From positions 186,001 through 250,000 of the forward strand of contig NIVC01000525.1 of assembly GCA_002269645.1 (NCBI GenBank): a stretch of 64,000 nucleotides of DNA, read 5' to 3'. The notes below the pieces were generated by a model, which was given only the letters and a program-made list of their open reading frames with translations, made no database searches and was not told the origin of the DNA. The translations under genes and the position numbers were made by a program. Shown piece after piece: positions 8,601 through 14,729 of the stretch. Position 1 is the first letter of the stretch; the number at the start of each line of letters is the position of its first letter. The stretch comes from Macrostomum lignano. Lineage: Eukaryota.

Positions 8601-11600
8601 GGAGAGCGGGATGGAACTGCTCAGAGCGGGATGGAGATCGGGATGGAACTGCTCAGAGCGGGATGGAGATCGGGATGGAACTGCTCAGAGCGGGATGGAG
8701 ATCGGGATGAAACTGCTCAGAGCGGGATGAAACTGCTCAGAGCGGGATGGAGAGCGGGATGGAACTGCTCAGAGCGGGATGGAGATCGGGATGGAACTGC
8801 TCAGAGCGGGATGGAGAGCGGGATGGAACTGCTCAGAGCGGGATGGAGATCGGGATGGAACTGCTCAGAGCGGGATGGAGATCGGGATGGAACTGCTCAG
8901 AGCGGGATGGAGATCGGGATGGAACTGCTCAGAGCGGAAAAACATCTAACAGCCTCTCAACCTCTGCGCCAACAGATTCTACGCTGCAGAAATCGCCATA
9001 GGTCTGTTCTTTCTGCACACCAAGGGAATCATTTACAGGTGAGTTTTCCGCGCGTGTTCAGCGAATTGATTCCTAAACTTCTGCATTCACGAGCTCCGAG
9101 TTTTAATGCTTGCATTTCAACCCGCGCAGAGACCTGAAACTGGACAATGTTCTGCTGGATAGCGAAGGCCACATCAAAATTGCTGACTTCGGCATGTGCA
9201 AGGAGAACATCTTCGATGGCGACACCACCAAAACCTTCTGCGGAACGCCTGACTACATTGCACCTGAGGTTGGTGTCAGCTGGGAATAGAGGGCCGGTCA
9301 TGTTAAACTAGCTAAGAGTGAAGCAAACTAGCGGTCAGGTCAGTGATTAAGTCAAACTAGCGGTCAGGTCAGTGATCAAGTCAAACTAGCGGTCAGTCAG
9401 TGATCAAGTCAAACTAGCGGTCAGGTCAGAGATCAAGTCAAACTAGCGGTCAGGTCAGAGATCAAGTCAAACTAGCGGTCAGGTCAGTGATCAAGTCAAA
9501 CTAGCGGTCAGTCAGTGATCAAGTCAAACTAGCGGTCAGTCAGTGATCAAGTCAAACTAGCGGTCAGTCAGTGATCAAGTCAAACTAGCGGTCAGGTCAG
9601 TGATCAAGTCAAACTAGCGGTCAGGTCAGAGATCAAGTCAAACTAGCGGTCAGGTCAGAGATCAAGTCAAACTAGCGGTCAGTCAGTGATCAAGTCAAAC
9701 TAGCGGTCAGTCAGTGATCAAGTCAAACTAGCGGTCAGTCAGTGATCAAGTCAAACTAGCGGTCAGGTCAGTGATCAAGTCAAACTAGCGGTCAGGTCAG
9801 AGATCAAGTCAAACTAGCGGTCAGGTCAGAGATCAAGTCAAACTAGCGGTCAGTCAGTGATCAAGTCAAACTAGCGGTCAGTCAGTGATCAAGTCAAACT
9901 AGCGGTCAGTTTAGCGAGTCCTGCTCCTAAGCAGAAAAGTTATATTTTTCTGCTCTGTTTGAGATCCGTTATGTTTATCGTGTTGAGCGGGGGCCCGGCC
10001 TTTCTCTAGATGAAGACCGGATATTGATGCTGGATGATGGGCTATAGGCGATGAAGCTTTGCGTCAGTTAGACAGACAGACAGTCAGTTGTGCACTCAGC
10101 TGAAGGAGTTGAAAAGGCAGGCGCAGATGAGGGAGAATTAGGCCGGATTAGGATGCATGCCTGTTTGCCTGGTGGCCCGACAGCTCCCTCCGGCGAATCC
10201 GGGGGGGGGGTCACCGGTTGGCTGACCCCCCCCCCCTTCACCGAGAGAAAAGTCCCCGATCGAGTTAACTTCGGAAGCCGATTGCAAAAAGATTTGAATT
10301 TGCCAATTTAGCTTCTTTGCGACGAATTTTATCGGTTGATCCCCGACCCCCATTGATCCAGATAATTCTGTACCAGCCCTACGGCAAGTCGGTTGACTGG
10401 TGGGCATTCGGCGTGCTGCTGTACGAAATGCTGGCCGGCCAGCCGCCATTCGACGGCGAGGACGAGGAGGAGCTGTTCACGGCCATCACCGACCACAATG
10501 TGTCCTATCCCAAGGTCATGAGCAAGGAGGCCGTCACCATTTGCAAAGGGGTGAGTTGGAAAATATGTCGGGTTGGCAGTGCAGTTTACCAGATCAGGTC
10601 AAATAAGGTCTGGCCAGGCATACTAGGTCGGGAGGTCATATTAGTTATAGGTCATCTTAGGTTAGGTCATATTAGGTCAGGAGGTCATATTAGTTATAGG
10701 TCATCTTAGGTTAGGTCATATTAGGTCAGGAGGTCATATGTGGGCATAGGTCATCTTAGGTTAGGTTATCTTAGGTCAGGAGGTCATATGAGGGTATAGG
10801 TCATCTTAGGTTAGGTTATCTTAGGTCAGGAGGTCATATGAGGGTATAGGTCGTCTTAGGTTAGGTTATCTTAAGTCAGGAGGTCATATGTGGGCATAGG
10901 TCATCTTAGGTTAGGTTATCTTAGGTCAGGAGGTCATATGAGGGTATAGGTCATCTTAGGTTAGGTTATCTTAAGTCAGGAGGTCATATGTGGGCATAGG
11001 TCATCTTAGGTTAGGTTATCTTAGGTCAGGAGGTCATATGAGGGTATAGGTCATCTTAGGTTAGGTCATCTTAGGTCAGGAGGTCATATGTGGGCATAGG
11101 TCATCCTAGGTTAGGTCATATTAGGTCAGGAGGTCATATGTGGGCATAGGTCATCTTAGGTTAGGTTATCTTAGGTCAGGAGGTCATATGAGGGTATAGG
11201 TCATCTTAGGTTAGGTCATATTAGGTCAGGAGGTCATATGTGGGTATAGGTCATCTTAGGTAAAGTCAGGAGATCATCTTATGTTGGGGGTCATGTTAGG
11301 GCAGAGGTCATATAAGGTCAGGAGGTCATCATATTAGAGCAAGAGGTTACGTCGGGTCAGGAGTTCATTTCAGGTCAATGTTTCAAAGCAGGTTTGATTT
11401 TTTCAGGTCAAGAGAAAAAAAGAGATCCAGCATTGTCAAATTAGGTAATTAGTAGGCCAATTATATCAGACCATCGAGGTCGCTAACAGGTCAGTAGGGG
11501 TCATGCCAGGTCAATTGTCCCTACCCGCAGTTCCTCACCAAGGACACCAAAAAGCGCCTCGGCTGCTCCCCGGCCGGCGAGCGCGAGATCCGCGATCACG

Positions 11601-14600: not shown

Positions 14601-14729
14601 TTCGATCGTCAGTTCACAGACGAGGCGGCCAAACTGACGCCAACTGACAAGCTGTTCATCATGAACCTGGACCAGACTGAGTTCACCGGCTTCTCCTACG
14701 TTAATCCGGAGTTTATTGTGGATGTCTGA
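2491..14729 (+). CDS. PKC: Conventional protein kinase C, 3' part (hinge + kinase domain + V5). join(2491-2625,3814-3987,7473-7564,8976-9038,9130-9268,10362-10550,11531-11671, then 12674-12880 OR 14577-14729). Regulatory C1/C2 exons not found in window
   Basis: All exons are bounded by AG/GT with consistent phases (0,0,2,2,0,0,0). Translation gives [80 protein letters not shown] and PPFKP, which are cPKC hallmarks. Confidence 0.96.
2716..3637. repeat. ~22-bp minisatellite (aaatctgggagattccccattc), PKC intron
   Basis: Period 22 with small variants. Confidence 0.96.
3814..3987 (+). CDS. PKC: PKC exon (VLLAERKGT...LHSCFQTM)
   Basis: cag/gtgagc boundaries; contains the catalytic Lys in AIK; 58 codons. 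Confidence 0.95.
4065..4385. repeat. 34-bp minisatellite (gtggacattgtggcgataagggtagactctctaa)
   Basis: Period 34. Confidence 0.92.
4425..4835. repeat. 12-14-bp minisatellite (tgggaatatctcac)
   Basis: Visible tandem units. Confidence 0.92.
5578..7399. repeat. 16-bp minisatellite (cattccgtccgatgac) with a 14-bp variant (cattccgtcctggt)
   Basis: Over 100 units; the source of the spurious 350-590 aa ORFs. Confidence 0.98.
7473..7564 (+). CDS. PKC: PKC exon ([30 protein letters not shown])
   Basis: ttctag/gtgagt boundaries; ends in phase 2. Confidence 0.95.
7590..8937. repeat. 20-bp (ggatggaactgctcagagcg) plus 12-bp (ggatggagatcg) compound minisatellite
   Basis: Fills almost the whole PKC intron 7565-8975. 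Confidence 0.97.
8976..9038 (+). CDS. PKC: PKC exon ([20 protein letters not shown])
   Basis: aacag/gtgagt boundaries; phase 2 at both ends. Confidence 0.95.
9130..9268 (+). CDS. PKC: PKC exon: catalytic and activation loops (DLKLDN...DFG...[12 protein letters not shown])
   Basis: gcag/gttggt boundaries; canonical kinase motifs. Confidence 0.96.
9325..9910. repeat. 28-29-bp minisatellite (tcaagtcaaactagcggtca(g)gtcagtga)
   Basis: Period 28/29. Confidence 0.95.
10362..10550 (+). CDS. PKC: PKC exon ([17 protein letters not shown]...AVTICKG)
   Basis: ccag/gtgagt boundaries; 63 codons. Confidence 0.96.
10640..11262. repeat. 50-bp minisatellite built of aggtca-like subunits
   Basis: tgggcatagg at 10741 and agggtatagg at 10791. 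Confidence 0.93.
11531..11671 (+). CDS. PKC: PKC last common exon ([12 protein letters not shown]...VQPPFKPRI)
   Basis: cgcag/gtgagt boundaries; 47 codons; phase 0. Confidence 0.95.
12040..12425. repeat. 26-bp minisatellite (attgtgatagactgaggattaatccc)
   Basis: Lies upstream of PKC exon A. Confidence 0.94.
12674..12880 (+). CDS. PKC: PKC alternative terminal exon A ([31 protein letters not shown]...FFDFEH...DASG*)
   Basis: tttgcag acceptor in phase 0; NFD..FT motif and LTP turn motif present; 68 codons then TGA. Confidence 0.8.
   Translation, partial: RDDRDVDNFDKVFTKCDVKLTPVDMAVIHNLSTVTGCDPFFDFEHRNENYAPQASHLYQLMSALDASG
12990..13805. repeat. 41-bp minisatellite (gttagaaatggacacctgttagacacctggaaatcacgtgt)
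   Basis: Lies between PKC exons A and B; about 20 units. Confidence 0.94.
14577..14729 (+). CDS. PKC: PKC alternative terminal exon B ([50 protein letters not shown])
   Basis: gccag acceptor in phase 0; canonical turn motif (LTP) and hydrophobic motif (FTGFSY); ends TGA. Confidence 0.93.
   Translation, partial: KSARDVSNFDRQFTDEAAKLTPTDKLFIMNLDQTEFTGFSYVNPEFIVDV

Follow-up and report, generated by a model that had tools for sequence, protein, structure and literature searches.

Paired alternative V5 terminal exons in a classical-type protein kinase C gene of the flatworm Macrostomum lignano, probably a copy of an old bilaterian exon pair

The 64,000-nucleotide stretch of the Macrostomum lignano genome analysed here (contig NIVC01000525.1, positions 186,001 to 250,000; called the window below) contains the 3' (kinase) half of a protein kinase C (PKC) gene, which ends in two homologous terminal exons, A and B, for the C-terminal V5 region. 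The pair is probably the flatworm copy of an old bilaterian arrangement, in which an upstream-type V5 exon is followed by a betaI-type one, with both exons functional. The data are read most simply as a single old duplication with repeated losses afterwards; this tandem exon duplication would have preceded the split of spiralians, arthropods and vertebrates, with the pair kept in some lineages and lost in others. The initial annotation of this DNA had proposed either an ancient switch or a convergent duplication, and the evidence (shared layout in other phyla, profile comparisons and a published age of Bilateria) favours the ancient switch, because the same pair occurs in a rotifer, a barnacle and two metazoan contigs and profiles match the two exon types with the vertebrate ones.

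The two complete phase-0 terminal exons described in the initial annotation after the exon at 11531-11671, each with its own acceptor, motifs and stop, were reproduced exactly (Table 1), and each fits the same donor after ...QPPFKPRI. Exon A contains NFD, the FxxxFT motif (FDKVFT), the turn motif LTP and a hydrophobic motif reading F-F-D-F-E-H; exon B contains NFD, FDRQFT, the turn motif LTP and a hydrophobic motif reading F-T-G-F-S-Y. The phosphorylation site of the hydrophobic motif is therefore occupied by Glu in exon A and by a phosphorylatable residue in exon B. Additionally, exon A has a 4-residue insertion ahead of the hydrophobic motif and a 21-residue extension after it (AP..S.L.QL..), and it retains all the invariant columns of the upstream-type alignment. 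With the tails joined to the common exon, the Pfam profile Pkinase_C (cutoff 20.9 bits) gave 26 bits for A, covering only the first 27 of the 44 profile positions, and 54.5 bits for B, which was covered over the full length. A third V5 exon was sought in the window and none was found.

The gene is a classical-type PKC according to the similarity of its kinase domain and tails, on which the class assignment rests because the window begins downstream of the C1 and C2 exons. The classical PKC P0115 (731 aa), used as a tblastn query, was matched over residues ~377-731, and the kinase exons, whose edges are approximate where they derive from tblastn, are 75-90% identical to it. PKC beta and alpha are the top PDB matches, with iota, eta and theta ranking lower. 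The database protein matching best is P0001, a M. lignano entry in UniRef, with near identity across the C-lobe and common exons and exon B; the likeness extends even to residues that the window encodes in an intron, and the window is accordingly M. lignano DNA or a nearly identical copy.

P0001 also departs from the window in places. It contains residues that the window encodes in the intron directly upstream of 11531 (11498-11530), has apparently frame-disturbed stretches, such as EMLAASRHFDG, and ends in ...FIVDAWADAARA where the window has ...FIVDV and the stop (14724-14729). These differences suggest that P0001 is a flawed gene model or comes from a copy that differs slightly.

From its composition, frame and conservation, exon A looks like live coding sequence. 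The guanine-cytosine (GC) content at the first, second and third codon positions (GC1/GC2/GC3) is 0.58/0.35/0.70 in exon A and 0.51/0.33/0.71 in exon B, the flanking introns having a GC content of 0.40, and the GC3 of exon A lies within the range of the kinase exons (0.60-0.92). Open frames were found in about 9% of the intronic 68-codon segments, a share inflated by minisatellites, and the combination of an open frame with the composition of exon A was found in none of the 11,310 intronic 68-codon segments of the PKC gene, so that a chance origin of the open frame was rejected. No frameshift interrupts the frame, which stays open across all functional motifs.

The conservation of exon A can be followed in a diverged paralogue of the same species, P0128 (UniRef100_A0A1I8GZD6, "protein kinase C"), whose public model ends in an A-type tail and which was found by an exhaustive HMMER profile search of 1.84 billion representative proteins; a word-indexed protein search with the upstream-type profile gave 5 matches only. 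Isoform A of the window and P0128 are 82% identical over 248 residues, with an alignment that is gapless across the junction of the common exon and exon A. The identity amounts to 40/61 residues (66%) in exon A and 33/47 (70%) in the constitutive common exon; since the divergence of the paralogues, exon A has thus been conserved to nearly the same degree as the constitutive exon, and this conservation covers the Glu-containing hydrophobic motif as well as the 21-residue extension.

Exon B is plainly of the betaI type by the comparisons made. In pairwise alignments with PDB entries it scored 138.9 bits against PKC-betaI (8se2), 113.5-117.1 bits against the PKC-alpha entries and 103.8-107.9 bits against the betaII entries; on held-out profiles it scored 110 bits with the B profile and 61 bits with the upstream-type profile, and in a neighbour-joining tree it falls within the B clade together with betaI. 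Human betaI itself gave 101.7 bits with the B profile and 68.1 bits with the upstream-type profile. PDB entries 8se2 and 3pfq bear out, respectively, the betaI and the betaII sequence quoted in the initial annotation.

The assignment of exon A to the upstream (alpha/betaII-like) type is supported through intermediates, that is, through profiles and a bridging paralogue and not through direct comparison. The later set of hidden Markov model (HMM) profiles was built from 50 invertebrate upstream-type tails, 87 B-type tails and 38 vertebrate alpha/betaII/gamma tails, with the queries held out. Exon A scored 43.6 bits with the invertebrate upstream-type profile, 33.4 bits with the B profile and 31.1 bits, its lowest value, with the vertebrate alpha/betaII/gamma profile; the corresponding scores were 58.3, 41.9 and 47.4 bits for P0128 and 65.0, 31.9 and 44.5 bits for P0205. 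The paralogue P0128 starts with KDPRDVENFD, which is the KDPR..ENFD signature typical of the upstream type, and by retaining this start it bridges exon A of the window to the upstream-type family. A phylogeny of V5 peptides, which had been suggested as a check, groups exon A with the invertebrate upstream type in 75% of bootstraps, in an unrooted neighbour-joining tree of 49 columns in which divergent sequences may attract each other. The upstream types of invertebrates and vertebrates are in turn linked to each other: betaII scores higher with the invertebrate upstream-type profile than with the B profile, the vertebrate alpha/betaII/gamma profile outscores the B profile on 50/50 invertebrate upstream-type tails (mean +14 bits), and the invertebrate upstream-type profile outscores it on 38/38 vertebrate alpha/betaII/gamma tails (mean +13 bits), a reciprocal preference that is partly built in because the collection rule used the ENFD signature, common to vertebrate tails.

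Paired terminal exons were also looked for in other animals and were found in the rotifer Rotaria sordida, the barnacle Pollicipes pollicipes and the metazoan contigs L010 and L012 (Table 1). At these loci the order is the upstream-type exon and then the betaI-type exon, with a phase-0 junction after PP[FY]KP[KR]I. The B exon of L010 looks arthropod-like in sequence. In Dermacentor, an upstream-type exon was found alone within +/-10 kb.

Several of the loci compared have features of their own. In Rotaria sordida there are two copies of the last common exon, at 9775-9918 and 9998-10153, 223 bp apart, the first of them broken by N; a local duplication or an error of assembly would each account for this doubling. 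The barnacle locus has, immediately upstream of the PKC gene examined, the end of a further full classical PKC gene (1-29 of L004), and in Bactrocera (L003) more PKC-like kinase exons flank the gene (2333-8255 and 13209-14150); tandem classical PKC paralogues seem to be common in arthropods. Almost intronless classical PKC genes of compact genomes are present in L005 (8158-10426; ENA KERN20-1 scaffold_61) and L008 (178-2423), where the common region continues directly into an upstream-type tail.

A lineage-specific origin, in which exon A would have been copied from exon B within flatworms or macrostomids and diverged fast, so that the vertebrate-like layout is convergent, is unlikely, but it can draw on several observations that weigh against an ancient pair. 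In pairwise comparison the common exon joined to A scores betaI 92 > alpha 88 > betaII 78 bits, which contradicts the earlier claim of a direct resemblance between A and betaII, and the description of exon A as simply "closer to betaII" was set aside. The start of exon A, RDDRDV-NFD, is B-like and resembles B-type exons such as exon B itself and that of P0115 (TDDKDASNFD), and a first profile test, trained on few sequences, barely separated the types (35.7 versus 33.1 for exon A). The shortness of the tails (~50 residues), the unrooted tree and the collection rule, with the limits given above, also count against an ancient pair. So do the loci at which a single V5 exon was found in the sequence examined: Bactrocera has the B exon only, with an intron of <100 bp and no second V5 exon, Oesophagostomum has the B exon only, over a 1.4-kb intron and its flanks, Darwinula has an annotated upstream-type tail and no B exon within 10 kb, and the compact gene of L005 has the upstream type only, with no betaI-type exon within 4 kb downstream. 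Furthermore, convergent tandem exon duplications recur in the same gene families, Pkc53E being a convergent case in a different region (Martinez-Gomez et al. 2022, PMC9741552). Against a lineage-specific origin, the profiles trained on 50/87/38 sequences place exon A with the upstream type by 10 bits and its nearest relatives, P0128 and P0205, by 16 and 33 bits, and both relatives carry the DPR..ENFD signature. Exon A also bears upstream-type marks of its own, in the hydrophobic residue after NFDx (KVFT) and in V-I-H-N-L-S versus the F-I-M-N-L-D-Q of B-type exons, and the same exon order recurs at four other loci, the rotifer and the barnacle included.

Even less probable is that exon A is a dead duplicate, a relic no longer spliced into mRNA, with isoform B as the only product. 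No A-form product of this locus was found in a word-indexed search of a 5.8-billion-protein collection, a result that also tells against two functional exons; the public M. lignano model for this locus (P0001) has the B tail, and the Pkinase_C match of exon A is partial. A relic is nevertheless hard to reconcile with a frame that is intact through all functional motifs, with a codon-position GC pattern identical to that of expressed exons, with an identity to the paralogue close to that of the common exon (66% versus 70%, the 21-residue extension included) and with the use of an A-type tail as the coding end in the public gene model of P0128.

Under the preferred reading of an old pair with two functional exons, we infer that both exons are spliced in, for which the coding composition and the conservation between paralogues give indirect support. 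Exon B joined to the common donor would give the standard tail of invertebrate classical PKCs and of vertebrate betaI, and exon A joined to the same donor would give a second tail, of the type of the vertebrate betaII exon and of the PKC-alpha and PKC-gamma tails. How exon A is terminated bears on how far the choice resembles that of mammals. Both exons could be used with exon A ending its own transcript as an alternative last exon, unlike the mammalian cassette, and such alternative polyadenylation is a real possibility, though not the favoured one. Exon A has its own stop, the 1.7-kb stretch from exon A to exon B is mostly a 41-bp minisatellite, and the sole consensus-like donor in the 120 bases past the stop of exon A is a GTAAGA that starts at 12971; that same donor-like GTAAGA would, on the other hand, permit a mammalian-style cassette, and between the exon A stop and exon B there is no AATAAA and a sole ATTAAA, at 14171, 1.3 kb downstream. 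After the stop of exon B, AATAAA occurs within a 149-bp x3 repeat just 3' of the exon, through which it has a second copy at 15116.

The hydrophobic motif is where the two tails may differ in function. Phosphorylation of this motif stabilises PKC, and loss of the phosphate marks the kinase for degradation; in atypical PKC and PKN an acidic residue is present at the site, and the FxxxFT motif has been linked to mTORC2. Isoform A would carry a constant negative charge at the hydrophobic-motif priming site, because Glu is fixed in F-F-D-F-E-H, and would be insensitive to dephosphorylation there; exon A retains the FxxxFT motif and the Thr-Pro of the turn motif, and its distinct 21-residue extension may bind other partners. 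Asp or Glu at the hydrophobic-motif site was found in 9/54 invertebrate upstream-type tails (listed in Table 1), in 0/91 B-type tails and in 0/38 vertebrate alpha/betaII/gamma tails. Among the B-type tails, 89/91 have Ser or Thr at the motif, which is unresolved in the other 2. A broader proposal, here put forward tentatively and on balance doubtful, is that the ancient V5 choice toggles between a betaI-type tail with Ser/Thr and an upstream-type tail in which invertebrates have repeatedly fixed Asp/Glu, permanently "primed" and escaping dephosphorylation, and that PKC-alpha and PKC-gamma are upstream-type survivors of the pair after the vertebrate genome duplications.

The choice between betaI and betaII is a textbook example of how splicing is regulated in mammalian signalling. 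The ancient origin of the PRKCB switch is already claimed in print, only as a table entry, and the flatworm gene is a further example. The pair in flatworm, rotifer and barnacle gives sequence-level backing to that supplementary-table claim, which would mean a switch kept for several hundred million years in several lineages. No paper was found in the literature on flatworm, rotifer or barnacle V5 exons, nor did literature searches for C. elegans pkc-2, Aplysia PKC Apl I and M. lignano PKC turn up any V5 exon pairs. M. lignano is experimentally manipulable, which makes it a simple animal for removing either tail on its own, and the Glu of exon A suggests a concrete, testable difference between isoforms; the kind of phenomenon is one already known.

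Almost every intron of the PKC gene has its own unrelated minisatellite, with periods of 14-171 bp and up to 116 copies (406-15356 of the window), and much of the intron length consists of these arrays. Convergent with the PKC gene, on the minus strand at ~25362-45999, is a diacylglycerol kinase (DGK) theta-like gene; the adjacency of two diacylglycerol-signalling genes may be a coincidence. Two more minus-strand segments, a weak cytidylyltransferase-like match and a coding-like open reading frame (ORF), are probably exons of further genes (Table 1).

Table 1. Features of the window and of the loci compared with it.
Feature	Sequence	Position	Strand	Remarks
Kinase exon, linker and glycine loop (...LGKGSFGKV)	window	2509..2628	+	tblastn with P0115; edges approximate
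Kinase exon, AIKILKK ... LHSCFQTM	window	3802..3987	+	77% identity to P0115; GC3 0.66; edges approximate
Kinase exon	window	7473..7562	+	90% identity, tblastn with P0115; edges approximate
Kinase exon	window	8977..9039	+	tblastn with P0115; edges approximate
Kinase exon with catalytic loop, DFG and APE (RDLKLDN...DFG...TPDYIAPE)	window	9128..9271	+	tblastn with P0115
Kinase C-lobe exon (...AVTICKG)	window	10362..10550	+	matches P0001 and P0115; GC3 0.84
Last common exon, FLTKDT...QPPFKPRI, phase-0 end	window	11531..11671	+	acceptor cccgcag/TTC, donor AGAATT/gtgagt
26-bp minisatellite, 14 copies, intron between common exon and exon A	window	12055..12424	.	repeat scan
Exon A, upstream alternative terminal V5 exon, 68 codons and TGA	window	12674..12880	+	acceptor gcgtttgcag/AGA
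41-bp minisatellite, 20 copies, between exon A and exon B	window	12992..13805	.	repeat scan
Exon B, downstream alternative terminal V5 exon, 50 codons and TGA	window	14577..14729	+	acceptor ctcgcgccag/AAA
Candidate poly(A) signal, first AATAAA after exon B stop	window	14968..14973	+	within 149-bp x3 tandem repeat
Tandem arrays	window	406-1113, 2143-2463, 2720-3638, 4056-4383, 4425-4837, 5573-7400
Tandem arrays	window	7594-8937, 9324-9910, 10624-11261, 12055-12424, 12992-13805, 14906-15356
DAGK_acc	window	25362-25754	-	Pfam, DGK theta-like gene
RBD_DGKtheta and DAGK_cat	window	28883-29515	-	Pfam, DGK theta-like gene
RA	window	34573-35001	-	Pfam, DGK theta-like gene
C1_1	window	45499-45999	-	Pfam, DGK theta-like gene
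Coding-like ORF, no Pfam match	window	59450-59764	-	Pfam scan
Cytidylyltransferase-like weak match, PF01467	window	63114-63371	-	20.8 bits, just below cutoff
Upstream-type exon, rotifer	Rotaria sordida (L001)	10280-10438		NNPRQAENFDKCFT...; common exon end 10141
BetaI-type exon, rotifer	Rotaria sordida (L001)	13683-13853		...DTSNFEEEFT...LIMNIDQNEF...
Upstream-type exon, barnacle	Pollicipes pollicipes (L004)	14861-15040		KSARSAENFDPVFR...FRGFECVNPYF...; common exon end 11334
BetaI-type exon, barnacle	Pollicipes pollicipes (L004)	24543-24695		KHRKDVNNFDKQFT...
Upstream-type exon	metazoan contig L010	9990-10174		common exon end 8598
BetaI-type exon	metazoan contig L010	11857-12009
Upstream-type exon	metazoan contig L012	10088-10240		common exon end 8281
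BetaI-type exon	metazoan contig L012	12937-13089
Upstream-type tails with an acidic site	P0128, P0178, P0185, P0187, P0200, P0205, P0209, L004, window	14861-15040 (L004), 12674-12880 (window)

Among known systems, atypical PKC and PKN resemble isoform A in the replacement of the phosphorylatable Ser/Thr by an acidic residue, as in the FEGFEYINP of P0196 and P0227, which we take to be atypical PKCs from established knowledge of the family. They are, however, separate families with a fixed tail, whereas here a classical-type PKC has two tails to select from, of which one is acidic. The same gene family includes Drosophila Pkc53E and C. elegans pkc-2, and substitutions of tandem duplicated exons are listed for it in arthropods and nematodes; pkc-2 is among the nematode genes with tandem-exon events (PMC9741552), and Pkc53E is listed as "different region, convergent" (Table S5 of PMC9741552). 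The Pkc53E event thus lies in a different region, and the Bactrocera and Oesophagostomum loci are without a second V5 exon in the sequence examined.

In mammals, the betaII V5 exon of PRKCB lies upstream and has a stop, so that its inclusion gives betaII and leaves the last exon untranslated, and its skipping gives betaI (PMC3537621); the age of this event is given as "Age of event (at least): Bilateria" (Table S2 of Martinez-Gomez et al. 2022, PMC9741552). As in vertebrate PRKCB, the PP(Y/F)KP.. junction of the M. lignano gene is followed by a pair of homologous terminal coding exons that both end in a stop, the betaI-type one being downstream; a relation of the upstream exon to alpha/betaII/gamma is supported through intermediates. 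The gene is unlike PRKCB in that exon A is highly divergent from betaII (31 bits with the vertebrate profile), carries Glu and not Ser in the hydrophobic motif, and is lengthened by a 4-residue insertion as well as a 21-residue extension.

Exon A is also like the invertebrate upstream-type V5 exons (Rotaria, Pollicipes, Dermacentor, Darwinula and ~50 more), which have the same position and phase. In common with exon A they have a hydrophobic residue behind NFD as well as the patterns [VI]-[IL]-x-[NH]-[LI] and F-x-x-F-[S/T/D/E], and the acidic hydrophobic-motif site recurs in 9/54 of them, the barnacle exon and exon A included. Most of these exons start with [KN][DN]PR.[AG]ENFD, from which the start of exon A differs and to which P0128 conforms with KDPRDVENFD. 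This paralogue (A0A1I8GZD6), a separate diverged gene of the same species that is 82% identical to isoform A, and P0205 are the only ones with which exon A has the AP..S.L..L extension in common.

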